A stretch of DNA of 64,000 nucleotides from Paraphysomonas bandaiensis. Lineage: Eukaryota; Protista; Chrysophyceae. The translations under genes were made by a program, and so were the position numbers. The notes under the pieces were generated by a model that saw only the letters and a program-made list of their open reading frames with translations, was not told the origin of the DNA and searched no databases. The stretch's first letter is position 1; every line of letters begins with the position of its first letter. Of this stretch, positions 17,327 to 63,257 are shown one piece after another. The stretch covers positions 35,318 through 99,317 of the forward strand of contig CBFFRP010000608.1 of NCBI GenBank assembly GCA_965644295.1, read 5' to 3'.

Positions 17327-20300
17327 TCACTTACGTCGTTTGAACGTCTTTTCTCTAATAACCTCAACAGATGATTTTCGATCCTCTCCTAGGCATCTCT
17401 TCCTGTGTTTCTCGAAAGTTACACCACACAACGATTTCGTGAATATGTCTGCTGTCTGATCATCAGTTCCAACGTGGTACAATATGGCAGTGTTAAAGAG
17501 GCCATCTGGATCTACGTGTTCCCTAACCCAATGGTATTTGATCTCGATGTGTTTTGAACGCTTATGGAACACCGGATTCAATGCTAAGTCACGAGCACTC
17601 TGGCTATCCAAGAAAAATGGTGTGGGTTCGCGTAGACGAAGTCCTAATTCGTCCAACACCCCCCGAAGCCATACCAGTTCTTGCATGCCAGCATACATAG
17701 CCTGATACTCACTTTGCATTGATGACGTTGAAACGGTAGCCTGTAAAATGGACTGCCAGATAAGTGGTCCACCGGCGGCAAATACTATGTATCCAGTCGT
17801 AGATCGGCGTGACACCACATCGCCAGCCCAGTCTGCATCAGTAAAGATGTGCATGTCGAAGTGCTTACTACTGAACCGAATACCCTTTCGAACTGTACCC
17901 CTAACGTACTGCAATAGGTAAGTCATTAAATAACATGTAGCCCGGGTAGGTTTAGATGCATATCTAGATAACAAACCAACTGCATATGCAATATCAGGGC
18001 GAGTATTCATAGATAGATATAACATGGCACCCAGTAGGCTGCGATAAGGATAATTATCTACTCCCTCTTTCTCCTCAGGTGTGAGATCACTGTCTGCTTG
18101 ATTAATTCTGTCCATTGCATCGAGGGGTAGCGGCGACTTTCGAATTTTTGATGAGGGACCGAGGAAATCAGTGAATTTGAGAAGAATTTTCTCCGCATAT
18201 GTCTGCTGATCCAGCTGAATGAAATCCTGTCCTCGCGTGACACGAACATTGAGGAAATGTTCAACGGCTCCCATATCCGTCATGTCGAATCGTTCGCAGA
18301 ATCTAGCTTTTATTTCTGTAATAATATTAAGGTCAGCACATGCGATGACGATGTCATCCACATATATGGTGAGATACACTTTATGACCTTTATATACAGC
18401 ATGATACAAGCAAGGTTCTAACACACACGGTCGAAATCCCAAGGATTTGATGAACTTGTTTATGGTTTTCCACCATGATCGTGGTGAACTACGGAGCCCA
18501 TATAGAGATTTCTTCAATTTAAAACAATGTCCAGGTGGAAGTTGAAAATCTGGAGTAGGATTCATGTAAACGTCGCCTTCAATATCGGCATAACAGAACG
18601 CACTGGATACATCGAGTTGATGCACAAACATACTGAACACAAGAGCCAACGCCAGAATCAACCGAACAGAGATACTCTTGACTACAGGGGCAAATGTGTT
18701 CTCCACATCTACGCCAGATTGTTGACCGTACCCAAGTGCTACAAGTCGTGCTTTATGCTTCTTGATGGAGCCATCCTTATTGTACTTTCGCTTATATACG
18801 TAACGAGATTTAAGAGGTCGAGCATCAGGCGGAGTTTCTACTACTTCAAACACTTCACGCTGAAAAAGTGCATTCCGTTCTAATCTGCGCGCCTCCTTCC
18901 ATTTGTCTGCATCACTACACTGAAGAGACTCTTCGTATGACTCAGGCTCCCTATAATCAGACGGGTCAGTAATCAATGAGTCATCACTTGCCTTACACAT
19001 ATTAACGGCATCTTCCCCACACAGGAAGTTGATTTCACCCAGAGTAGACACGTTGGTCATCACTCTTTGGGTTCGTACCCTCTTGCTTATAGCAGCTGGC
19101 GGGTTAGCAGTTTGACTACTAGGGACACACACACTTGTCTCTCTAGACGAAGTGCTCACGCTTCTCTCGGGTAAGGCACATGGAGTCTGCTCACTCCCTG
19201 ATGAGTCATCTGCCGTAGACTGTTTGGGTGTCCCACCCCCAGCCGGCATCGATCGCTCCTCACCACCTGCCCCATCGTCACGGGTCGCAGGATTTTCGTG
19301 CCACCTGCGCAAATTATACGACTGAGTTAGTTTCACTACATCAGCTATATGTATCGGAGTCTTCTCCTCCAACTGCTCTCTACCAGCAGTTACTAAGGCT
19401 CTATAAGCCACGATCAAACCTTTCCGAACCACGACTCTCGTAGTCCTAAACAGGAAACCCTCATCGGTATGGTAAGATCCAATCAAATGGTTGAACTCTT
19501 CAACCTGTCGAGCCTGGGGGTCATGTTTAACTAACGCAGCCTCCAGCTCCTCGAAATACTCCTTCTCTCTGGGGGGAATGCTTTCGTCGAATAACACATG
19601 TATTGACACAACTTCGGACTCTCCTAGCCATATTCTGTATCCCCTCTTCTTTTTGGAGAGACCTAAAAAATATCCAATCTGCGATTTGCCTTGCCAATTT
19701 TTTCGACGATCACCCCTGGGAGTCTTCACATAAGCTTTACACCCCCATCGACGTAAACTGGATAAATCCGGAACAGAACCTCCAGGTACACACTCCATGG
19801 GAGACATCCATCCGCGGTAGGTCCGAGTGGGCATCATGCGAATAATTTCAGATGCATATACGTAGGCATCCCACCAGAATGGAACTGGGAATCCAGCATC
19901 TGACAGCATTGCAAGAGTCATCTCTCCCGCGGTTCGAAAACGTCTCTCAGACACGCCATTCATCTCAGGTGAGTCCGTAGAGCTCCACGTAATTGAGGTG
20001 CCAAACTTGCTGTGAAGATACTCCTGAATAGACTTATCAATGAGTTCGGCTCCCCCATCGGCATGATACACAGATAGTCGATGAACTCCTGGATACTTGG
20101 GAAGAAGAACCTCGACCCAATTCCTAATGTGCTCCAACACCTCACTTGCGGTCCGAGTTTTCAACGGAAACTCCCAGCATTCCTTGGTGGCCACATCTGT
20201 CAACGCTAATACATACCGGTATCCCTGTCGAGATGGACAATTGAAATATACTCCTATATCGACAGTTACTTTTTCCAGAAACCTTGTCGCCTGTAGCTCT

Positions 20301-22093
20301 TCATCACTCTTCCCAGGAAACGAGATTCTGGTAATCTTCGACTTTGCACAGGCTTTGCAGATACCCTTGGTTTTCTGAAGACTCTTCTTACTCAGATGAG
20401 ATCTGTTAAGGCCACTCCCTGTGAACAACCGATGTTTGAAAGCTTCTAATAGCTTGCGCTTGCTGACATGCCCGCATCGTTTGTGAAGCAATTCCAGAGG
20501 GTCTTCATTTGTTTTATCCGATAGATGTACTTCTGCAGCTAAACTCGTCAAGTCAGGTAACTCCAACAAGTCCTTTAGATCAACGAAGGGCATTCCATTA
20601 TCTGAATACCTAGCTTCAAGAACAACTTCTGCATTATCCAATCGCACTATTTTTGGAGTCTCTAGCAGCTGAAGTCCATATCCAAGCGTACGAAGCATCC
20701 CTCCCGAACAAATATTCTTGACTGAGTCGGGGCATACCTTTAATTTTGTCCAGTCACCATAGTTGCCTGAGCCAGTATATCGTAAGCTGGATCCCGCTTT
20801 GGTTGTCTGAATGGCTCCTTCGTCTGCAACAAATGTCTGTAGAATATCACTGTTCTTGATGATGAAGAGTTGTTTCGACGCGCAGCTGTCTAGAAATACA
20901 ATGTCTTCAGAAGTATGCAGCACCTCATCTGCAACATTCACTTCTAAGTTACTCGATTCATCATATAACAACATGTGCACAGAATCATCCTCTTGCTCGT
21001 CTCTTTGAAGATAACGATTCCAGTCCGAGCTCTTTTTGATGGGCCTTTCCATCGTACCGTTTTTTTCGGAAAAATGTCGTTTTTTGTTAACAGAATCCTC
21101 CGCTTTCCTTGTTTTTCGAACTTGAGCTCGATGTCTGCATTCATGAGCTCGATGTCCAGATACGCCACACACAAAGCATCCATCATCATCAGCGCCATTT
21201 TTTGACTTACTTCTTTTGGATTCTGATTGCTCTCTTCGATGCTTGTTTTTACCATTGCGCTTCATTTGGGAGATCTTCAAATCTTTCTTCTTCATCCAGC
21301 AGTTCTTCTGCGTGTGACCTCGTTTTCCACATTTAGAGTATGAGCATGTTACCTCTTGATCAGAAGAATTCCAATGTACTTCCGGTGCAGAAGACTCCTG
21401 TGGTAGACCCTTTGCCTGGTCGAAGCGCCTACAAATGGTGATCATCTCATTAAATGAAATATCACCTTTCAGGTAGATGTTTGTGTACAGCTGCTCCAGA
21501 TCCTTCCTCGTTTCCAGCGCAGTCTGCAGCTTCGTTTTTTTGGATACGTCAGTTGGCGGCTCACCAAGTTCCGTCATTTTTTGGACAATTCCGTTCAGTC
21601 GATCAATGGCTGTACACACCAGCTCCCCCTGTAGAATTCTAAATGACGCAAACTGTTTATTCAGTTCCACCAATTCGTACTGGGTTTCCCCACGAAATCT
21701 AATAACCAATTTATTTACCAATTCACTTGCTAACATCTCCTTATCGGGATCATCAGGTGGAAGCATGTCCTTCTCTCGGAAGTATTGATCAACAATCTCA
21801 AGCGCCTCCGCCACAGGTTGAACAGCTTCGAAGATGGAACTGATGCAGGTGTCTTTCCTCTCCAACCACTTGTCGAGGTCTTCCTTATACTTGTTTTTCA
21901 CAGCTGTGGACGCATTGTCAGCAGGTCGATGCGGTCGCTCCTCCAACCCAAGATGGTTCCGATTCTTTCTCATGAGCCAAACTCTCAATCGCTTCGTCCA
22001 GTTCACAACACCGAACTGATCGAACTTCGGAAGGTGTTTCCATTCCGAACTACTTGCGGAACTACCGTCTGCTACCATGTCAAGGTTTGACAT
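17327..22093 (-). CDS. Copia Gag-Pol polyprotein, 1588 aa
   Basis: Two Zn knuckles, protease FLDSCAS, HKRCGH..CKAC, integrase D..D..E (VTVD/HADGG/NGVSE), RT IYVDD, RNase H TDADWAG..SEY..DSQSA..ADIFTK. Confidence 0.99.
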   Translation of the reverse strand: MSNLDMVADGSSASSSEWKHLPKFDQFGVVNWTKRLRVWLMRKNRNHLGLEERPHRPADNASTAVKNKYKEDLDKWLERKDTCISSIFEAVQPVAEALEIVDQYFREKDMLPPDDPDKEMLASELVNKLVIRFRGETQYELVELNKQFASFRILQGELVCTAIDRLNGIVQKMTELGEPPTDVSKKTKLQTALETRKDLEQLYTNIYLKGDISFNEMITICRRFDQAKGLPQESSAPEVHWNSSDQEVTCSYSKCGKRGHTQKNCWMKKKDLKISQMKRNGKNKHRREQSESKRSKSKNGADDDGCFVCGVSGHRAHECRHRAQVRKTRKAEDSVNKKRHFSEKNGTMERPIKKSSDWNRYLQRDEQEDDSVHMLLYDESSNLEVNVADEVLHTSEDIVFLDSCASKQLFIIKNSDILQTFVADEGAIQTTKAGSSLRYTGSGNYGDWTKLKVCPDSVKNICSGGMLRTLGYGLQLLETPKIVRLDNAEVVLEARYSDNGMPFVDLKDLLELPDLTSLAAEVHLSDKTNEDPLELLHKRCGHVSKRKLLEAFKHRLFTGSGLNRSHLSKKSLQKTKGICKACAKSKITRISFPGKSDEELQATRFLEKVTVDIGVYFNCPSRQGYRYVLALTDVATKECWEFPLKTRTASEVLEHIRNWVEVLLPKYPGVHRLSVYHADGGAELIDKSIQEYLHSKFGTSITWSSTDSPEMNGVSERRFRTAGEMTLAMLSDAGFPVPFWWDAYVYASEIIRMMPTRTYRGWMSPMECVPGGSVPDLSSLRRWGCKAYVKTPRGDRRKNWQGKSQIGYFLGLSKKKRGYRIWLGESEVVSIHVLFDESIPPREKEYFEELEAALVKHDPQARQVEEFNHLIGSYHTDEGFLFRTTRVVVRKGLIVAYRALVTAGREQLEEKTPIHIADVVKLTQSYNLRRWHENPATRDDGAGGEERSMPAGGGTPKQSTADDSSGSEQTPCALPERSVSTSSRETSVCVPSSQTANPPAAISKRVRTQRVMTNVSTLGEINFLCGEDAVNMCKASDDSLITDPSDYREPESYEESLQCSDADKWKEARRLERNALFQREVFEVVETPPDARPLKSRYVYKRKYNKDGSIKKHKARLVALGYGQQSGVDVENTFAPVVKSISVRLILALALVFSMFVHQLDVSSAFCYADIEGDVYMNPTPDFQLPPGHCFKLKKSLYGLRSSPRSWWKTINKFIKSLGFRPCVLEPCLYHAVYKGHKVYLTIYVDDIVIACADLNIITEIKARFCERFDMTDMGAVEHFLNVRVTRGQDFIQLDQQTYAEKILLKFTDFLGPSSKIRKSPLPLDAMDRINQADSDLTPEEKEGVDNYPYRSLLGAMLYLSMNTRPDIAYAVGLLSRYASKPTRATCYLMTYLLQYVRGTVRKGIRFSSKHFDMHIFTDADWAGDVVSRRSTTGYIVFAAGGPLIWQSILQATVSTSSMQSEYQAMYAGMQELVWLRGVLDELGLRLREPTPFFLDSQSARDLALNPVFHKRSKHIEIKYHWVREHVDPDGLFNTAILYHVGTDDQTADIFTKSLCGVTFEKHRKRCLGEDRKSSVEVIREKTFKRRK
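22068..22077 (-). other. Primer-binding site TGGTAGCAGA (tRNA-iMet type)
   Basis: Immediately internal to the 5' LTR; complementary to the ..UCUGCUACCA 3' end typical of initiator Met tRNA. Confidence 0.85.
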
Positions 22094-24836: not shown

Positions 24837-27800
24837 TTACCACTCAACATCATCATCACTCGAATCAGATCCATTGGTTGTGTTCATTTTTCGAATTTGC
24901 TGTAGCTTCTTCTTGAAGCTCTTCATGGCATCCTCTTGGGAATGCTGCCTTGTGCGTGCTGGAACTGGGACTGGTTTCGAAACTACCAGTGACTCAGCCC
25001 GATTTCCTGTATCGCGTTTAGGGATCGGCTTAGTGGTAATCCTCTTCTTTGCTTTCTCAGCTTCTTTTTTCCAGTCTTCATTTTCCTGCACAGATATCTT
25101 GTACATCGTTGAAAACTTTATGATGAGAGCAAAGAAGGTCTGCCAGGGGTCTTCATCAGTGGCTCCAGGGCTACAACCTAATACAATCTCACCAAAATGT
25201 CCCTTGAGAGACGACACTGCGCGATCTGCTTCGTCAAACAGTAAACTAAGGTCTTTGTACGCTTCAGAAGCCGAAGTTATAAACTGACCTACAACACAGA
25301 TACTATTATAAGAAACAGATGAAGAAGTAGTCGCCAACACACCTAAGCGGTCAATGAGTGGGCCTTTGACAGACGGGCTCGACAACTCCTCTGCGAATTC
25401 GATTTCCGCCATACAGTTATCAAGAGACAATTGTAAATCTTTCATCACCACCTCCAAGCTCTCACGGAATATCTTTGGCGCCAGCCACATTGATTTCCAG
25501 GAACTGTAGAACGGTGGCATATCAGGGTAGAGCATTGAGAGCTGCTCGATCACGAAGTGCAATAGTGTCCTTCTGCCTGGTCCTGTTTGTTTAACGTTTC
25601 TCACCTTTAGCAGAGTATCAAGGCGGTAGCCATGTGCTTGTCCACGTGTAGTAGCACCATTCATGTAATTACCAGCGGATAGGATAGCGCCCATAACAGT
25701 TCGCAGGGAGCCCATACATGGTTCACCGGCTAACTCGGTGACGGACTGAATAATAATATTAAGCTGCTCAGATACCATCTCCGCTTGTTCAAACCAAGAC
25801 AACATGATGCGCTGAGTTATTAAACGCTGCTCCAGTCTCTCAATATCCATGAACAAATAAAACAGCTTTCCGCAAAAATCGAGTTCATCAATTTCGCCAT
25901 TGTAGGACCGTATAACATTCAACTCCTCGGTCGTCGGTACCAACAGATTAAGAATAGTGTCATTAACATCAGCAGTAAGCTCATCTGGATCGAGTCCAAT
26001 CACCAAGTCAAAGAGTTCCTCGGGGGTCTTCCGCAACTTACCACATGCTATAGCAACATTCTGGGTCCTACGGCTGTCGAAAAGGGACACTTTTTTGGTT
26101 GCGTTGCTACCACCTTTCACGGACGACCGTATATTAGCCCTTCTACGGCTAGTAACGACAGCAAACTGAGATTCCAGATCTGACCACGACAACTCCGGTT
26201 CCTCCACTTCCTCCCATATTGTATTGTAAACATTTACCGGCTTTACCTTGCTCCAGAATAGTTGTTTCACCTTTTTGGTTGGAGTTTTAACCGGTTTCGG
26301 CGGAGGCATAGGTGGTAATGGAGGTGCCCGAGGAACAGGCCGGGAACTATCAGGAACCGCGAGAGGATACTTTCGACCCGCAAATACGTCCTCTTCCTCA
26401 ACAACTGGACGTGGTGCGTAGTTACTGACAACGTATGTGGTAATATCTTTCAGCGCTCCAAGGAGTTTACCCTCGTTGCGATGAACTTTCAATTCATACT
26501 GCAAAAAATTGGCTAGGTCAACTGCACTCATTGAAGGACCTGACGCAGACGTTCCCCCACCATTCACAAAATCTTCAACACTGGATGCATATATAGTAGC
26601 TACATCTTCCTTGGCAACCGACCTGTACAATGCCACCTGCTGCTCCAACTTCTTCCTCAGTTTCAGTAGTACTGATGCACTCAACGTAGGAACAGGTGGA
26701 CGACGAAAGGGCGCCCGGCGAAGAAACCTGCCTTTACGCACTGCAGTAAGAGCGACCAACCATTTGTGCTTTGTCGCAACTGTATCAAAACATAAGTGCA
26801 GTTTTCCTCCATCAGCAATAACAATGGTAAAACAATTCTGAAGAAGAAAATTTATTTTAGATGTAAGGGTACTATAGTCCACAATGTCGACAATGTCGTC
26901 TATTAAAATAGTTCCTAATCTCTTGCTTGCTGAATGTTGTGCAGTATATGTACTGCACTCTACTGAAGCATACCATGCCAAACTGTTGTCTTCAATTTTG
27001 TACCACAGCCGCCTCGCAGCCACACTCTCTTTAAGCATTTCTGTGCGACTACCCTGAAAGGAGCTTCGTCTTCTGGACATAGCAGATTCAGATGCCCTCC
27101 TCTCGGTTAGAGATGACCGACGCAAGGATAATCTTCTCCCCACCTTACCTATCGACGTCATCGTGTTGTCTACGATCTTTCCGAGGTCATCTCCTGTCAT
27201 CCACATTCCATCGGATTCACCTTCAACTTCATCCTTTTCCACAATTTCAATGGCGTAGCCTTCCATTTTGCCTTCATTTGGATGCACCACGGCCAACAAG
27301 CCATCAGCAAGCCCTTCGCCCATGTCCTCATCGCATACCCACACCCCTGCTCTCAACTTCTGTGTGTATGACTCCGCCGTTGTACATTCCCCGCAGTTAC
27401 TTTCGAAGTCATCGACACCAGATGCTACACAGGGTGAATCCTCTAGAGGAGTTGGCTTCTGTGGACTTCGCATCCCACCCGTTTTCCTGTACTCCTTCAG
27501 CATTTCCGAACACGTTTTATCAAAATCTAAATCAAGCAATGTTCGACGCATAGCCATTCGTTGATCAATGTCTCGCTCATATAGCATAATAGAGTTTACC
27601 AACCCCAGAATGGCAGTCTGAAGCAGAAGGTTGCCTGATTTGAAAGCATTAACCAGAAGCGAAAAGAGTTTCTCTCCTCGAGACCGAGCAAGTCGAGAGA
27701 GCCCCTGAATAACCTGCCACACGGCATCAGCGCCGCCAAATATTATGCATTCTGAGAGCAGATCTAAAGCCTCTAGGGCTAAAGATGGGTGTTCAAATCT

Positions 27801-29882
27801 CAGTGCATCTACAAAACTATCGACTGTACCCTTGGTGGCCATAACAAATACACGACATTCTGTTTCCATGATGATTCTAAAACATCGAAGAATTTGCTGA
27901 ACGCTGCACATATCAACCTCATGCAAAGGATGCTGTTCAAATGATTTGTCCAAAATCGATGCAAGAATAGAAACGCCTCTAGTAGCACAAAAGCGATGAA
28001 GCCATTCGAAGTTTGCAGTGGCTTGTCTTATACGGTACCTCAAGATTAGTAGAAGGAAAGATGAGGCAGGATCATCAGAGCCCAGGCTGGCGATCAAATC
28101 TCTGTCTTCAGCAGAAAAGCAAATATCTTCATCCCACAGCGAAACACCTTTTACAATACGCGCCAGCTTATCAGTTGTCGTGAGCTCAACATCCAGGACT
28201 GCTTTGATATCATTAGGCACCTCAAGTAGCCTCAATAGATCATCGAAAACTCTATCGACCTCTGTGATAGTACCAGCATCCAGTTGCGCGTCTGTTTTAC
28301 CCTCGACAGTCCCTACTAATCGTCGCACTACAGCCCGCGCAACTTTATCATGGAGGTACGGTAGTTCTTGAGCACTTGTTTCTTCCAGGGCCTCTATAAA
28401 CGCCTTCTTCGATTTAAACCCCGTATAGTCAATGCTACGGTCCAAACAAAGCTGCGCAAGGTCAAGAATTCCCATCGTTCTCAAATCATGAGCATCATGG
28501 GGAGTTGTAGAAGGCTCATCCGGCTCTGAATCTGAATCAGAAACATGGGCAAAGAGTGAGGTCACTCCAGTGTTTGTCGGAACAGTCTCAGTCTTGTTTT
28601 TAGTCGAGTCTCCCATGGTGGTCTCAGGAGAATCTGAACCAGATACACTACCGTCAGGAGTACTCACAAGAGACTGATAGTCGCCTTGTGATGCACATGC
28701 TACCACACGAGAAATTCTTGTAGGATTGCCGCCATACAGCTGGGCAATACTGTCAAGAACCTCTTCAGCCTCTCCCCCAACCTCTTGAAGAAATTCGAAC
28801 TCAGTGTATTTATCCAGTAACTCCTGTAAGCAGTTTTCCAGCTGAAAACGGCGACTTTCGAGCTCATCTTCTCCTAATTTAACTCCAAAAGCACTACGCT
28901 TATACTGCCTTGGGAAAGGCTCTTCAACTGCAATATCCGATGTGACCCTCAAGCGGTTGAACGCATCCCTGATATCGGAGTAAAAGTGGTATGCGCTTTG
29001 TACTTGGCGGCACTTTACAAAAACGCGTACAAGAAAAACAGACTCCTGCATACTCTCCAAGATATCAACATCTGTAACTAGCGACACACGAACCGCTGCA
29101 GCATGATGTTTATGCCTCATTTGCAGCACAGTGGAAGCCAGTGCGTGCTCCCACCGCTGTAGCACAGCTTCAGTGTGTGCCGAAACTAGTATGTCGGTCC
29201 GAACACCCCCACTACGAGCATTATAGTCTCGCCCCCCACCAGAACTTATACTTAGTAGATAAGGACGTTCACTACTCATCGGGCGACGTCTAGTTACCGT
29301 GCAATGCTTATCAATGAGAAACTCGCCTTTTTTTTGAGCCATTGTATCGTCTGTGTAATGGCAAAGAGAATAAGCAGTAGCCGTACGGCTCAGTACGAAC
29401 CACCGCCTATTCCAAGCCATCATAATATTGCTTTGTTTTTGCAGGTACCCATAAAGCAGCACGCTAGAACTCTCCCCACTCCATATGTCAAGTTTAATAG
29501 ATTTCCGAGGGTGCATGCTTAAAGATGCATCAGCACAAAATTCTGCAGCCTGACTGCTGTGTAGAGGATCAATCACATCTTGGATAGCTCTCTCCCAACT
29601 GCCAAGTGTAGTCATATCTGGAGCACATATGAGCATCTCCTTCTTTGTGGTGTCATCATATATACTGAGCAGGTGCTTATGAGAGCCCTCTGGAGGCTTA
29701 CGAGTGATTCTAGTGGAGCCACTGATCTTACACTCCCCCTTCTTAGAGGCGAGAGTCTGATCTGTGTAATAGCACAAGCTTGTATCTGTTAAAACAAACC
29801 AGCGAGTGTGCCAGGTCGATATGAGCCCATGTCCCTGCTTATCAAGGAACCCGTTCTTAATTACTCTATGAGACGATGCCAT
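24837..29882 (-). CDS. Multidomain formin: PH-PH-PX-like-GBD/FH3-PH-FH1-FH2 (probable 54-nt intron 25289-25342)
   Basis: FH2 motifs KQLFWSK, TIW, R.QNVAI and GNYMNG.T.RGQAHGY.L..L.K; short poly-Pro FH1; two N-terminal PH domains (GFLDKQG..W..RWFVL); PX-like FP..K...RR.QLE..LQ. Confidence 0.93.
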   Translation of the reverse strand: MASSHRVIKNGFLDKQGHGLISTWHTRWFVLTDTSLCYYTDQTLASKKGECKISGSTRITRKPPEGSHKHLLSIYDDTTKKEMLICAPDMTTLGSWERAIQDVIDPLHSSQAAEFCADASLSMHPRKSIKLDIWSGESSSVLLYGYLQKQSNIMMAWNRRWFVLSRTATAYSLCHYTDDTMAQKKGEFLIDKHCTVTRRRPMSSERPYLLSISSGGGRDYNARSGGVRTDILVSAHTEAVLQRWEHALASTVLQMRHKHHAAAVRVSLVTDVDILESMQESVFLVRVFVKCRQVQSAYHFYSDIRDAFNRLRVTSDIAVEEPFPRQYKRSAFGVKLGEDELESRRFQLENCLQELLDKYTEFEFLQEVGGEAEEVLDSIAQLYGGNPTRISRVVACASQGDYQSLVSTPDGSVSGSDSPETTMGDSTKNKTETVPTNTGVTSLFAHVSDSDSEPDEPSTTPHDAHDLRTMGILDLAQLCLDRSIDYTGFKSKKAFIEALEETSAQELPYLHDKVARAVVRRLVGTVEGKTDAQLDAGTITEVDRVFDDLLRLLEVPNDIKAVLDVELTTTDKLARIVKGVSLWDEDICFSAEDRDLIASLGSDDPASSFLLLILRYRIRQATANFEWLHRFCATRGVSILASILDKSFEQHPLHEVDMCSVQQILRCFRIIMETECRVFVMATKGTVDSFVDALRFEHPSLALEALDLLSECIIFGGADAVWQVIQGLSRLARSRGEKLFSLLVNAFKSGNLLLQTAILGLVNSIMLYERDIDQRMAMRRTLLDLDFDKTCSEMLKEYRKTGGMRSPQKPTPLEDSPCVASGVDDFESNCGECTTAESYTQKLRAGVWVCDEDMGEGLADGLLAVVHPNEGKMEGYAIEIVEKDEVEGESDGMWMTGDDLGKIVDNTMTSIGKVGRRLSLRRSSLTERRASESAMSRRRSSFQGSRTEMLKESVAARRLWYKIEDNSLAWYASVECSTYTAQHSASKRLGTILIDDIVDIVDYSTLTSKINFLLQNCFTIVIADGGKLHLCFDTVATKHKWLVALTAVRKGRFLRRAPFRRPPVPTLSASVLLKLRKKLEQQVALYRSVAKEDVATIYASSVEDFVNGGGTSASGPSMSAVDLANFLQYELKVHRNEGKLLGALKDITTYVVSNYAPRPVVEEEDVFAGRKYPLAVPDSSRPVPRAPPLPPMPPPKPVKTPTKKVKQLFWSKVKPVNVYNTIWEEVEEPELSWSDLESQFAVVTSRRRANIRSSVKGGSNATKKVSLFDSRRTQNVAIACGKLRKTPEELFDLVIGLDPDELTADVNDTILNLLVPTTEELNVIRSYNGEIDELDFCGKLFYLFMDIERLEQRLITQRIMLSWFEQAEMVSEQLNIIIQSVTELAGEPCMGSLRTVMGAILSAGNYMNGATTRGQAHGYRLDTLLKVRNVKQTGPGRRTLLHFVIEQLSMLYPDMPPFYSSWKSMWLAPKIFRESLEVVMKDLQLSLDNCMAEIEFAEELSSPSVKGPLIDRLGVLATTSSSVSYNSICVVGQFITSASEAYKDLSLLFDEADRAVSSLKGHFGEIVLGCSPGATDEDPWQTFFALIIKFSTMYKISVQENEDWKKEAEKAKKRITTKPIPKRDTGNRAESLVVSKPVPVPARTRQHSQEDAMKSFKKKLQQIRKMNTTNGSDSSDDDVEW

Positions 29883-30045
29883 TCACAGAAAGTTCCAACA
29901 CTACAGTTAGATATTCGTCAAAGGAGAAAGGCATAAGAAGATAAGGGGAATAATCAGTGACATGGTTCCAATACTAACACACTATAGTAACATACACACA
30001 CTCCACAGCAAGAAAATGAACATGTTCAAACAACAGCTACACAGA

Positions 30046-31137
30046 ACATACATACATACATACATACATACATACATACATACATACATACATACAAACA
30101 TACATACATACATACATACATACAAACATACATACATACATACATGCATATGTACATACATACATACATACAAACATACATACATACATACATACATACA
30201 TACATACATACATACATACATACATACATACAATCATACATACATACATACATACATACATACATACGAACATACATACATACATACATACATACATACA
30301 TACATACATACATACATACATACATACATACATACATACATACAAACATACATACATACATACATACATACATACATACATACATACATACATACATACA
30401 TACATACATACATACATACATACATACATACATACATACATACATACATACATACATACATACATACATACATACATACATACATACATACATACATACA
30501 TACATACATACATACATACATACATACATACATACATACATACATACATACATACATACGAACATACATACATACATACAAACATACATACATACATACA
30601 TACATACATACATACATACATACATACATACATACATACATACATACATACATACATACATACATACATACATACATACATACATAACATACATACATAC
30701 ATACATACATACATACAAACATACATACATACATACATACATACATACATACATACATACATACATACATACATACATACATACATACATACATACATAC
30801 ATACATACATACATACATACATACATACATACATACATACATACATACATACATACATACATACATACTACATACATACATACGAACATACATACATACA
30901 TACATACATACATACATACATACATACATACATACATACATACATACATACATACATACATACATACATACATACATACATACATACAAACATACATACA
31001 TACATACATACATACATACATACATACATACATACATACATACATACATACATACATACATACATACATACATACATACATACATACATACATACATACA
31101 TACATACATACATACATACATACATACATACATACAT
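30046..31137. repeat. (TACA)n microsatellite, ~1.09 kb, between divergent formin and MORN genes
   Basis: Read directly. Confidence 0.99.
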
Positions 31138-55642: not shown

Positions 55643-56654
55643 TGAACCTGGTTACCCGTTACCTTTAAGTGAACTTAAATTCTATTATAGGGGATAAGAT
55701 TACTCATTGTAGACTATTTAATAGTGACCTTTCAGGTTGGATTGTATCTAATGTTACTGATAGGAGATAGTCTCAGCCAAAAAGGAAATTTTATACTTAA
55801 ATGTGATATATGATCCTCCACCTACTAGTAATAATGTGCTCTAACGGTTGTTGCTGCGTCGTCTCCCAGCGCAGGTACTAATAGTACTGTAAGTAGTAGT
55901 GGTGTTATAGCATGCAGTAGTAGTGGAGATAGCTATATATGAGAGTATGCAATGTATTCAAAATCAGGCAATTCGGTTGGAGCATTTGAAATCTCAAGAG
56001 AGGCAAATAACTCTTAACGCAATAAATGATTATAATAACAACTATATTTTTCGACTTTTTCTTTAACCTCTCAGATACTAGTTACAGTATAATAATTCAG
56101 TACTTAGATATGAAACCTGGTGAAATCGATTTACCAGGTTTTGGTATTACCTGATGCGAGCATTCTTCCAAAAACCACGGACAGTTTTTCTAGTAAAAAT
56201 CCTATTTCTTTTTTTAAGGAGAATTAAGCACAGTTATGAAAATTGTGTTGAAAAAGTAGAGAATAGAGGGTGTATACAAAAACGTAACTCGACGGTGGAC
56301 CCTGCTTACTGTCAATATATTTCTATCGCCATTTCTTGTCATTGATGAGTGCCCTAAAGAGTTATGCTACATTGGATAAACCTGATTATTTTGAAATACA
56401 TAGTACTATCTTTAAAGGGGATAGTGGTTGGTGACTACAATCCTAACTACTTATTCTTTTGACGAGGCCAAGTACATAATTTCTACTGACAATATCATTC
56501 AACTGTGTTCAATAATGCATCACAATCTCTATTTCTATTTCAAAAAGTAACAATTCTACAGGACTAATATATGCTTTTATTGCTAACACACTATTAATTC
56601 CTAACCAATTTGCTAAATTGGATATTCATGACGATAGAGACATATTCACTTCTA

Positions 56655-59600
56655 TTATTGGAGATTACAATATTTGATCAAAACCTCCGTCACAGTGCTA
56701 CCTTCACGATCTGAAAGGCTAATGGAACATCTCCCTGATTCAAACTTTGTATCGTACCATGGTGATTTCTCAAAGCCAGGTATATGTCGTTTTTCTATAT
56801 TTATCTTTTCGTTGAACAGCCAATTGGTACGAAGTCGCTCACTTTTGGCCTTAGAGTTTTCTATTACATTATCCGGTAGATCACGGAAGTAGAAGGGATA
56901 GTTTATTAAATCATTCACTAACTTCTGCCGGGGCATATACTGGCTGCTGAACTGCATGTATGCAATCGCGAACGAACTTGCCACCACAACCCACATGATA
57001 ACAAGAACTGTGGTTAGAAGAGTCTGGGGAAACAAATCACTGTTCAGATTGTAAGCAATTACGACTATCACTGCCGATGCTACCGCAGCAGTGTAAGAGG
57101 CAGCTTTCCAGTAGTTTACAAAATCTACACTACAAGGCTGCATATCAGCCGAGTAATGCCGCTGAGTAAAGTCTTGATTTCTAAACCATAGCAGAGTGAT
57201 AGCCCCTAGAAAGACCGAAGACACAGTCGTAGATGCCACGGTCGTTGTGACGGATGCAGGTCCCATTACCACTACGAGTAGCATCGCACTCTTCACAACA
57301 TTGACCACCATAAGATACAGCTTCATGTATGAGACACCAGGTGGGCTGTTATCACGTGAATTTGACGCTGGAACCTCCAGAAGCATTGGAGTAATCATAA
57401 TTGAAAGGGGCACATAAAACGAGTATCCAACCATAGCAAAGACTGCTAAAAGTGCATGATCATCTCGCCAGCACTCAATGCTTTCATCTGCCCGTAAGCT
57501 AGCAAACACATCGTCAACATCATCCGTATAGTTACAGGAGAAAACCTGAAGCAGTTGGAAGCTAACGATCAAAAATAAAGCGTCACTTAAAATTGATATC
57601 AAAAGTCGCATACGAGGGGATATATTGTTCGGTCTTCCGTGCCCGTATACTATTGCCCCTGTGAAGGAAAAGAAAAACTCATCCTTTGAATTGCCTTGGC
57701 GTAAAAGCACGCCGTAATCAGTCAGCTCCTTTAGAAACTGAACAGAAAACAAGGTCAACAACAGTCCCACTATTCCAACAGCTGCCCACATCATTGTAAA
57801 CTGCACGGTGGTTCCAACTGTAACGCGAACATAGACTGATCGAAAAAGGGATTCGCCCCAAAAAGCCGAATTGGATGATTTATCCGATGTAGTATCGTCA
57901 TTGTCGTCATTGTCATCATAGGGATTATTCTGAAGTGCAAATGATGCCATTTGAACGAATTCAAAAGCCAAAGAACATATTTCAATAACATTAGCTGGAT
58001 TCCTGATAGAAAATGTATTCGGTGCAACTGGAGGGGTACTCTTTTTTAATGTAGTCGGGGACTTGTCATTCGAATACTTAACCTTACGATTAAGGCATGC
58101 GCACATTTGTATCGAAGACTCATTCTCATCATCTCTGTAGTATAGCTGCGGCGCTTTGGGTACTGCTGGTTCTCGAGAGATCCACGAATGGTAAGCTCTT
58201 ACCGATCCCAGTACTTGTAGCACAAGAACCCCTGTAAGATAAGATACCAACCAAATCGTTATGGTAGCACTATCTCTCTGCTGTCTCGCTCGAGGAAAAA
58301 TAACGTACACCATCATGTAAGGCAAACCAAGAATATAAAAACTCATGGGAAGGGATCGTAGTATAATTCTAATCCAGCGAAGCGCTTTCTGACTTGTAGT
58401 TTCTGCTTCAAGTGCGGCACTACGAGCTGCAACAAAAATGAGTGTTTCCTATTATCAAAATCAAACTATATCTCTTCGCATAATCTTATATTACAATGTC
58501 GGTATACAGTACACAGTTGGTGCTAGCTAACCTTGGAATGCAGTGGATTCTTTTTCAACAGTTTTAGTTCGCACAATAAGGATGGTAAAAAACGAAGGAA
58601 GAATCAAGGTGATTGCGGAGAATGAAACTAACACAAATGAAACCACCGATGCCAATACACCGTACCACTTACAGATCCACTTATAGCATATATCCGTATT
58701 TCTTATACACGCCAGCGTGTAGGCCAGAGTCTTGAATGCATTATCAGTATCCGTGAGAACATTGTCCACTAGTTTATTCTTCATAACCAGCATTTCCCAC
58801 AGAGAATACATGCAGTCCTTAATTTCAGAGAAGAGACTTTCAGAGCATGACTCCATGAACTGTCCACAACGAATACAGCACCAGCATATTGTTGCATATC
58901 GACGAGTGCTCTTACTTGTATTGTAAAACATGGCAGCTTGCGCCTCCAAATCATTACTATGTTCCAATAAATCATCCAGCGCTACTCTACGATCCATCAG
59001 CTTATCAATATTCCTACTATGATCGACCAGCTCCGATTTGATGCTCTCTGCGGTTCGTTTTATTTCTGACACAGACGATTGAATTCTATCGAGATAATCA
59101 TCACCAAGACGTTTATCACTCGAAGACAATTCATTATCTGTGTCAACGAACGCGTCAGCATTAAAAACTGTGTATATATCATCTCCAGTAGTATTCAGTG
59201 CAGGCCGTTGTTCTTCTGTTGTACACGGCGCAATGACCGTATCTAGGATCTTATTATTACTAGCAGCATCTATGTGTGTAAGTACAAATTAGGAAAAGTC
59301 TGTATTCAAATCGCATGCGCACAACCAACCTCGTTCTTTAAGAGGAGAGGATGGCTGTTGAGATACATTTCGCTTTTTCCCTCGTCGTTTTGCACTTCGT
59401 CGTTCTCGTTGTCGCGGTTCACTTCGTTGGCTAGCACTATGCCTTTTCTCACCCAGCTCCACAATGCCTTCTCCATCATCATCAACATCATCATCACCAA
59501 AGCCATCAATATCAACATTAGAACTAATAAGGCATATCTGTGAGCATGCACGATGCAAGAAAAATAATCTTATGTGTTTCAAGAGCTCGGAAACAGCTAA

Positions 59601-60092
59601 TTCATCGCGGAATCTCTCAAAAATTAATTGCAACATCATATCCACCACATAGTCCACATGCTGCCCCGTAAGAGTAGATAGCTCACAAAACTTAGCTGAT
59701 ACCGACCTAGCGACTTCCATCCCCTCAGACACAGACACAGTTCGCCAATACTCCATATCGATCTTGTTCCCAACGAGGAGTTTAAAGGGGCTGTTGGGCA
59801 CACACAGCGACTCTAACAGACGACAAGCAGCAGACAGAGACGAGCTGTCAGTGACGTCATAGACGACAACAACCGCATCATATCTATCTGCTGTGTCTCC
59901 CTCATAGAGATGAACCACTCCTGTTACATCCTCAGAACTCAAGAGAGAGCCAGTGACATACCTCAACACATCCAACACACTCTCTATGAGAGAACTCTTA
60001 CCAACACCACACGAACCAACCACCAGCACACTAACAGGAACACTCGCACTGAAAAAACCTTCAACAGTACTTCTCAACGCCGACTCATCCAT
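56655..60092 (-). CDS. Rab/Ras-like GTPase + R-SNARE + multi-pass membrane protein, ~1090 aa (exons 60092-59330, 59269-58532, 58426-56655)
   Basis: G1 GSCGVGKS, degenerate G3 DTADRY, G4 GNKID, G5-like ELST; synaptobrevin-type heptad NIDKLMDR..LDDL...SNDLE.QA..FY; ~11 hydrophobic segments. Both GT-AG introns are phase 1 and join the three ORFs in frame. Confidence 0.8.
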
Positions 60093-60128
60093 CTCACACT
60101 CAACAACAACAACCATAATGAAATATCC

Positions 60129-63100
60129 TACATACATACATACATACATACATACATACATACATACATACATACATACATACATACATACATACATACA
60201 TACATACATACATACATACATACATACATACATACATACATACATACATACATACATACATACATACATACATACATACATACATACATACATACATACA
60301 TACATACATACATACATACATACATACATACATACATACATACATACATACATACATACATACATACATACATACATACATACATACATACATACATACA
60401 TACATACATACATACATACATACATACATACATACATACATACATACATACATACATACATACATACATACATACATACATACATACATACATACATACA
60501 TACATACATACATACATACATACAAACATACATACATACATACATACATACATACATACATACATACATACATACATACATACATACATACATACATACA
60601 TACATACATACATCCATACATACATACATACATACATACATACATACATACATACATACATACATACATACATACATACATACATACATACATACATACA
60701 TACATACATACATACATACATACATACATACATACATACATACATACATACATACATACATACATACATACATACATACATACATACATACATACATACA
60801 TACATACATACATACATACATACATACATACATACATACATACATACATACATACATACATACATACATACATACATACATACATACATACATACATACA
60901 TACATACATACATACATACATACATACATACATACATACATACATACATACATACATACATACATACATACATACATACATACATACATACATACATACA
61001 TACATACATACATACATACATACATACATACATACATACATACATACATACATACATACATACATACATACATACATACATACATACATACATACATACA
61101 TACATACATACATACATACATACATACATACATACATACATACATACATACATACATACATACATACATACATACATACATACATACATACATACATACA
61201 TACATACATACATACATACATACATACATACATACATACATACATACATACATACATACATACATACATACATACATACATACATACATACATACATACA
61301 TACATACATACATACATACATACATACATACATACATACATACATACATACATACATACATACATACATACATACATACATACATACATACATACATACA
61401 TACATACGTACATACATACATACATACGTACATACATACATACATACATACATACATACGTACATACATACATACATACATACATACATACATACATACA
61501 TACATACATACATACATACATACATACATACATACGTACATACATACATACGTACATACATACATACGTACGTACATACATACGTACATACATACATACA
61601 TACATACATACGTACGTACATACATACATACATACGTACATACATACATACGTACGTACGTACATACGTACGTACATACATACGTACATACATACATACA
61701 TACGTACGTACATACGTACGTACGTACATACGTACGTACATACGTACGTACGTACGTACATACGTACATACGTACGTACATACATGCATACGTACATACG
61801 TACATACATACGTACGTACGTACGTACATACATACGTACGTACGTACATACGTACGTACATACGTACATGCGTACGTACGTACGTACGTACGTACGTACG
61901 TACGTACGTACGTACGTACGTACGTACGTACGTACGTACGTACGTACATACGTACGTACGTACGTACGTACGTACGTACGTACGTACGTACGTACGTACG
62001 TGCATGCGTACGTACGTACGTACGTACGTACGTACGTACGTACGTACGTACGTACGTGCGTACGTACGTACGTACGTGCATGCGTACGTACGTACGTACG
62101 TACGTACGTACGTACATGCGTACGTACGTACGTACGTACGTACGTACGTGCGTACGTACGTACGTACGTACGTGCGTACGTACGTACGTACGTACGTACG
62201 TGCGTACGTACGTACGTACGTACGTACGTACGTACGTGCGTACGTACGTGCGTACGTACGTGCGTGCGTGCGTACGTACGTACGTACGTACGTACGTACG
62301 TACGTACGTACGTACGTACGTACGTGCGTACGTGCGTACGTACGTACGTACATGCGTACGTGCATGCGTACGTACGTACGTGCGTACGTACATGCGTGCA
62401 TGCGTACGTGCGTGCGTGCGTGCGTACGTACGTGCATGCGTACGTACGTGCGTACGTACGTACGTACGTGCGTACGTGCATGCGTACGTACGTGCGTGCG
62501 TACGTGCGTGCATGCGTACGTACGTACGTACGTACATGCGTACGTACGTGCGTACGTACGTACATGCGTGCGTACGTACGTACGTACGTACGTACGTACG
62601 TACGTACATACGTACATACATACGTACATACGTACGTACGTACATACATACGTACATACGTACGTACGTACGTACGTACATACATACATACATACGTACA
62701 TACATACATACATACATACATACATACATACATACATACATACATACATACATACATCCATACATACATACATACAAACATACATACATACATACATACA
62801 TACATACATACATACATACATACATACATACATACATACATACATACATACATACATACATACATACATACATACATACATACATACATACATACATACA
62901 TACAAACATACATACATACATACATACATACATACATACATACATACATACATACATACATACATACATACATACATACATACATACATACATACATACA
63001 TACATACATACATACATACATACATACATACATACATACATACATACATACATACATACACACATACATACATACATACATACATACATACATACATACA

Positions 63101-63216
63101 TACATACATACATACATACATACATACATACATACATACATACATACATACATACATACATACATACATACATACATACATACATACATACATACATACA
63201 TACATACGTACATACA

Positions 63217-63250
<34 letters not shown>

Positions 63251-63257
63251 CATACAT
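60129..63257. repeat. 3.1-kb compound microsatellite: (TACA)n flanks around a TACG/TGCG/TGCA core (~61400-62700)
   Basis: Read directly. Confidence 0.98.

Follow-up and report, generated by a model that had tools for sequence, protein, structure and literature searches.

The stretch of DNA analysed here (the window: 64,000 nucleotides of contig CBFFRP010000608.1 from Paraphysomonas bandaiensis) carries on its minus strand a three-exon gene whose product joins a domain matching the Ras superfamily, a SNARE-like helix and a polytopic membrane module. It is one expressed gene and a member of a protist family built on that conserved module, which has about 600 residues and extends from a conserved amphipathic helix in exon 2 through exon 3. 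The coding sequence (CDS) totals 3273 nt with a single stop at its end, and the spliced product has 1090 residues, the chain ending in YCNLQ. The features of the gene, in window positions, are as follows.

59330..60092, minus: exon 1, codons 1-254, with the G domain and then an acidic and a basic low-complexity linker
59613..60038, minus: Ras-superfamily G domain by profile match (G1 at 60017-59994, G4 at 59771-59757, ELST at 59684-59673)
59270..59329, minus: intron 1, 60 nt, GT-AG, phase 1
58532..59269, minus: exon 2, with the SNARE-like helix, the Cys-rich stretch and the beginning of the membrane module
58998..59093, minus: Q-SNARE-type half helix, layers -7 to +2, with His at the Gln layer (59021) and a small Ala at layer -3
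58905..59012, minus: R-SNARE-type half helix, layers -2 to +8, with the Arg zero layer at 58991
58866..58886, minus: Cys-rich stretch after the SNARE helix, candidate S-acylation site
58575..58766, minus: start of the module, an amphipathic helix (DNVxxDxxNxF) and the first long hydrophobic segment, in which a Pro is invariant
58427..58531, minus: intron 2, 105 nt, GT-AG, phase 1
56655..58426, minus: exon 3, with ten predicted membrane helices, the cytosolic loop, the lumenal Cys pair, the C-terminal tail and the stop
57680-57636, minus: conserved, predicted cytosolic loop FFxSFxGxIxYGHG, in exon 3
57536 and 57473, minus: invariant, predicted lumenal Cys pair, in exon 3
56368..56654, minus: 3′ untranslated region, up to the poly(A) site in run X9
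60129..63257, no strand: TACA microsatellite, 782 copies, 3.1 kb, immediately upstream and outside the CDS

Gene Structure and Transcripts

A sequence-only reading of the window had joined three separate open reading frames (ORFs) through two phase-1 introns, and its coordinates proved exact. Transcript contigs from runs X8, X9 and X11 skip precisely 60 and 105 bases at the two introns, and all three exons stand in a single contig in X8 (3529 nt) and in X9 (3561 nt, with poly(A) at 56368). The RNA label of these runs is only a guess; we count their contigs as transcripts because the introns are missing and poly(A) is present. Pieces of all three exons are also found in a poly(A) marine metatranscriptome. 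Retention of either intron would bring in-frame stops, the exon ends flanking intron 2 are colinear with intronless homologs, and the gene is single copy in the 62.6-Mb genome, whose 18S gene looks chrysophyte-like.

The first of the three ORFs had been described as hidden inside a microsatellite read-through, and the TACA array does account for the spurious 1322-aa ORF at this place. As an N-terminus of the protein such a read-through is ruled out, since the transcript contigs start at 60098 or below (60098, 60097 and 60069). An in-frame ATG at 60116 may serve as an alternative start. At its 5′ end (60098-60099) the X8 contig continues, after AG, into 22 foreign letters matching a dispersed repeat with 99 genomic copies, which is followed by a 42-base tandem unit (loci L038-L062). 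A spliced leader was considered for these letters and rejected: none of the 24 copies examined is followed by a GT donor, and 4 bases are common to these letters and the gene. More likely, the contig is chimeric at this end or the strain carries an insertion.

A Constant Membrane Module with Interchangeable N-Terminal Parts

Searches were made exon by exon, and structure was predicted on a natural intronless homolog. A scan of 1.8 billion representatives with exon 3 returned 190 relatives. Nineteen rows form a close clade (support 100), mostly of metagenome sequences with 41-53% identity and the same domain order, and some of its members carry an additional C2 or CCDC53-like piece. This order, which the earlier reading had proposed to seek in other protists, recurs in single intronless ORFs (P0015, P0016 and P0017) and in four loci (L011, L012, L014 and L036), with some members present as neighbouring ORFs; at the level of sequence, it is confirmed by the intronless homologs. 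The module of P0179 is almost identical to that of P0015 and its N-terminus is different, which suggests that the two are tandem paralogs carrying unlike cassettes. Immediately upstream of P0015 is a CCDC53-like gene (L034:1-7537).

Distant members, at about 30% identity, come from Capsaspora, Rigifila, Amorphochlora, Nonionella, a cercozoan, Polykrikos and Apiculatamorpha, and their groups span Rhizaria, a kinetoplastid, a dinoflagellate, CRuMs and Discoba, with the reservation that predator transcriptomes among the sources may contain prey sequences. The named host organisms are phagotrophs or mixotrophs. No member from animals, fungi or plants was seen among the 30 relatives looked up by name, and a word search started from the Capsaspora module gave no match but the module itself.

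What precedes the module varies widely. The N-terminal cassette of distant members is a permuted Ras (motif order G3-G4-G5-G1-G2, in P0082, P0058 and P0160, the last being Capsaspora CAOG_08748), a canonical Rab (P0069), a G-alpha (P0045, P0064, P0065 and P0083), a split Rho-like domain, R and Q SNARE motifs, WH2, or nothing recognised, and several long members show no G domain. The single ORF of P0052 (L037:38-5005) encodes a Rho-like domain interrupted by some 570 inserted residues, then Qb-like and syntaxin-like motifs, then the module. Pfam-level Q-SNARE matches were obtained in this member and in that of Rigifila; a longin domain gave one weak match among distant members (E-value 0.21) and none in the window protein. 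The cassette types are scattered over the module tree, which was made by a quick method, is unrooted and has poorly resolved deep branches. Judged from these comparisons, what stays constant in the family is the membrane module, and the G domain type and the SNARE motifs are swapped, degenerate or lost. The name of a self-contained trafficking module, given to this protein before, is therefore too narrow. No description of the architecture or of the family was found in the open literature, in keeping with the earlier statement that no such protein was known; both appear to be undescribed, their constituent parts being known.

The module contains residues that are invariant across supergroups. 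An earlier estimate of about 11 passes holds for the count of hydrophobic segments in the window protein, which is 11, and probably not for eleven full passes. From the loop after the first segment onwards, Lys and Arg number 7.1, 0.7, 6.0, 1.4, 4.5 and 1.2 per loop, a clean alternation, and this charge bias suggests ten full passes and one segment that does not simply cross once. The same alternation is the reason for placing the invariant Cys pair in the lumen. The first segment has 29 residues and contains Pro; given a cytosolic N-terminus, the charge bias would leave both of its flanks in the cytosol, so that it is probably a hairpin or a re-entrant segment. The predicted structure of the homolog P0008 (103 sequences; predicted local distance difference test score, pLDDT, 88.8; predicted template-modelling score, pTM, 0.89) shows eleven long membrane-type helices.

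No Pfam family was matched by the module in 27 diverse members or by exon 3, no PDB entry was matched by sequence, Foldseek or VIA-align (best Z 6.8), and fold searches returned no G protein-coupled receptor (GPCR) fold. The rear core weakly resembles TRP-like PF06011 proteins of protists in language-model features (0.91-0.94), in predicted structure (template-modelling, TM, scores of 0.54 and 0.69 by target, for predicted models) and in one shared loop motif, C..L.AD.S..C. HHalign gives this likeness a probability of 25%, the PF06011 profile matched 0 of the 27 modules, and the gene locus is absent from its matches in the genome scan. PF06011 proteins occur in protists and giant viruses; the present family differs from them in an extra N-terminal three-segment part, in the YGHG loop and in a predicted cytosolic G/SNARE arm instead of an outside domain. 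The predicted fold of an uncharacterised Megaviridae protein (BFVD A0A5J6VI06) matches the rear core of the module (TM 0.69 by target).

The G Domain

Exon 1 matched Pfam Ras (PF00071) at 56 bits (cut-off 21.6, E-value 4.6e-15), with G1, G4 and G5 present, which bears out the small-GTPase motifs first noticed there. It also matches many Rab and Ras structures, chiefly over the second half of the fold (β4-α5). By these matches the domain is of the Ras superfamily. It is not assignable to Rab, and the Rab-like identity proposed before is not supported. The P-loop (G1) reads GSCGVGKS and looks intact, G4 is GNKID followed by a clade signature, EYWR, and the G5-like motif is ELST. All full-length close orthologs (about 45-50% module identity) retain G4-EYWR and G5, and in several G1 is altered or degenerate. 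Between helix 1 and strand 4, all 15 aligned sequences (the window protein and 14 close orthologs) have a short, variable segment lacking both the G2 Thr and DxxGQ. A shortened switch region had thus been recognised rightly, and DTADRY, offered as a stand-in for DTAGQERY, fails: it aligns just before strand β4 and is kept by no homolog. Because close relatives share the loss of switch I/G2 and of DxxGQ, the domain is probably a pseudo-GTPase with a conserved binding surface, an option that the sequence-only reading had left in brackets.

With Rab and Ras small GTPases the window protein shares the G1, G4 and G5-like motifs and the β4-α5 half of the fold. It differs from them in lacking the G2 Thr, DxxGQ and the Rab-family switch motifs, in having no C-terminal prenylated Cys motif, its G domain being N-terminal within the 1090-residue chain, and in being fused to a polytopic module. 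FeoB, Miro and atlastin are fusions of a G domain and membrane segments in one chain as well, but their membrane parts are unrelated, and they are not known to carry SNARE motifs or to exchange one type of G domain for another. The order of the G motifs is normal here, unlike that of cpRAS, whose permuted order is shared by the three distant members with a permuted Ras. The cpRAS paper gives VWA and COG2373-like hosts only and makes no mention of transmembrane segments or SNAREs (PMC2430557). A permuted Ras on a membrane module would be a third host architecture beyond these.

The SNARE-Like Helix

Exon 2 had been read as carrying an R-SNARE motif with Arg at the zero layer near 58991. The Arg lies exactly at that position and the second half of the helix is in R register, but the first half is in Q register. 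Pfam Synaptobrevin (PF00957) reached 26.3 bits against a cut-off of 26.4 (E-value 6.4e-6; 28.8 in the genome scan), so that the Ras match foreseen earlier was obtained clearly and the Synaptobrevin match came out at the cut-off; orthologs score up to 66.6, and the best solved-structure match of the helix is VAMP4. Scored in their own registers, the R half gave 52.6 and the Q half 28.9 (range of ortholog motifs 27-46), values reached by 0 of 1000 shuffles in either case. In R register the first half gave 15.5 versus 24-47 for orthologs, with Glu and His at layers -4 and -3. Layers -2 to +8 match R-SNAREs fully, and a sixteen-layer motif in one register is absent. Syntaxins of the same genome scored 31-35 on the ortholog Q profile, and a hidden Markov model of six Q motifs gave exon 2 only 2.6-3.2 bits, which supports the Q half weakly. 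By the ungapped profile and the layer table, the basis of this call, the helix is a Q/R chimera with a Q-SNARE-type first half and an R-SNARE second half.

The simplest origin of the chimera is probably a deletion between two separate motifs such as those of its relatives: a complete, canonical R motif is present in about ten orthologs, and in seven there is a Q-type motif standing apart, its zero layer occupied by Gln and its layer -3 by a small residue, with an unconserved second half. Pfam SNARE was matched by none of the close orthologs. Across orthologs the SNARE motifs range from canonical through degenerate (in P0179 the zero layer has Ile) to undetectable, which fits an accessory role and not an essential fusogenic one; as had been suggested before, the helix is more likely a decoy than a fusogen. 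About 110 residues separate it from the first membrane segment, with no direct tail anchor. The Cys-rich stretch is a possible S-acylation site, and about 75 further residues follow it before the 11 hydrophobic segments. At 58920 all four runs differ from the assembly, with Lys for Asn in the helix (layer +6/+7), which is either an assembly error or a strain variant.

The Arg zero layer, layers -2 to +8 and the basic and Cys-rich stretch after the motif are common to this helix and to the R-SNAREs (VAMP/synaptobrevin, VAMP7 and Ykt6), whereas the Q-register first half, the lack of a longin domain and of a single tail anchor, and the internal position ahead of 11 hydrophobic segments set it apart. 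With respect to Qb and Qc SNAREs, His replaces the zero-layer Gln and the full motif is missing. Tomosyn and amisyn are R-SNARE-motif decoys. The window protein resembles them in having an R-SNARE-like, likely non-fusogenic helix within a larger protein, and it departs from them in being embedded in the membrane, in its G domain and Q-type half and in giving no Pfam match to WD40 or PH domains. The genome holds eight other Synaptobrevin matches.

Interpretation and Alternatives

We favour, with a probability of about 0.45, the reading that the module serves an endomembrane compartment, for instance the food vacuole, as a channel, transporter or sensor, and that it has an arm in the cytosol by which it docks on the SNARE machinery, the contacts being a non-fusogenic helix and the surface of a pseudo-GTPase. 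The compartment is proposed because of the weak likeness to PF06011 and because the hosts are phagotrophic. The N-terminal arm would lie in the cytosol, where the G domain, devoid of switch elements, would offer a nucleotide-stabilised docking surface and not a cycling switch. The SNARE-like helix would bind cellular SNAREs in a partial, non-fusogenic bundle in the manner of tomosyn, and such binding might direct the protein to its compartment, the arm being a decoy or sorting signal, or tie the activity of the module to vesicle docking. Three points weigh against this explanation. The P-loop, G4 and G5 of the window protein look intact, and nucleotide binding, even slow hydrolysis, may still be possible; plain parity of 11 passes would place the N-terminus outside the cytosol, the hairpin or re-entrant first segment being assumed; and the TRP-like link is weak, at the HHalign probability given above and with no PDB match.

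The recurrence of at least four G domain types (G-alpha, canonical Rab, permuted Ras and Rho-like) on one module, in different parts of the tree, would also suit a receptor with a tethered G protein, in which a core of 7-8 helices responds to a signal from the lumen or the outside by activating the G domain in cis, the SNARE helix is the output and the G domain of this clade is a decayed remnant. The invariant lumenal Cys pair and the conserved cytosolic loop agree with such a receptor. However, the GPCR fold is missing from the searches, several long members have no G domain, and a single surface is unlikely to act as exchange factor for both G-alpha and Ras folds; we regard the receptor as unlikely. 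A genuine fusogenic SNARE, which would contribute its R helix, together with a Q helix in relatives, to a four-helix bundle and be anchored by acylated cysteines and the module, is less probable still. The full R-SNARE match at layers -2 to +8, the canonical R motif of about ten orthologs and the Pfam-level Q-SNARE matches of Rigifila and P0052 speak for it, but the Glu and His found here in R register, the loss or degeneration of the motif in other orthologs, the eight further Synaptobrevin matches of the genome and the absence of an adjacent tail anchor do not.

Two further explanations, both improbable in our judgement, start from the lability of the cassette. Its domains (Rab, Ras, Rho, G-alpha, SNARE, WH2 and CCDC53-like) are hubs that are known effector targets, and they could be a swappable bait aimed at the effectors of intracellular bacteria or of giant viruses, with the module as the responding pore or signal; a cassette that is often degenerate on a constant module, and the paralog-like neighbours P0015 and P0179, which differ in their N-termini, are consistent with such an integrated decoy. 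The gene is single copy here, though, no expansion of the family was seen, and EYWR is nearly invariant, unlike a fast-evolving bait. The degenerate G motifs and the SNARE motifs lost in some orthologs could alternatively mean that old fusions left the N-terminal domains as decaying passengers and that only the membrane module matters. Such decay is at odds with the retention of G4-EYWR and G5 in all full-length close orthologs, with the conserved heptad layers and with the recurrence of G-plus-module fusions across supergroups. Finally, nothing is left in favour of two or three separate neighbouring genes, or of an assembly artefact: spliced contigs from independent studies cross both junctions, as the sequence-only reading had asked of RNA data, homologs exist as single intronless ORFs, and we consider this option practically ruled out.

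Other Features of the Window

Very long TACA microsatellites (60129-63257 and 29962-30687) create spurious ORFs of more than 1000 codons on both strands. By their motifs, 17327-22093 (minus) encodes an intact-looking 1588-aa polyprotein of a Ty1/copia-type retrotransposon, and 24837-29882 (minus) a 1681-aa formin-like protein with PH-like domains. A short high-copy repeat downstream of the gene (56101-56152) matches many unrelated contigs.

Significance

Normally, SNAREs and Rab/Ras switches are distinct proteins, each with a single anchor. A polytopic protein with both, shared by lineages as far apart as Capsaspora, CRuMs, Rhizaria, Discoba and this marine protist, would fill a gap in the trafficking or signalling kit of early eukaryotes, one that model organisms would not show. 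A broader conjecture, to which we give only limited credence, is that of an ancient multi-supergroup family whose membrane channel or receptor has time and again taken G proteins and SNARE motifs into its own chain, as a one-protein switch from signal to fusion or as bait for microbial effectors in phagotrophic cells. The capture of four types of G protein by one module would be a pointer to what the module regulates, and the Q/R hybrid helix would be a natural test of the register rules of SNAREs. The Capsaspora member would open the family to bench study.
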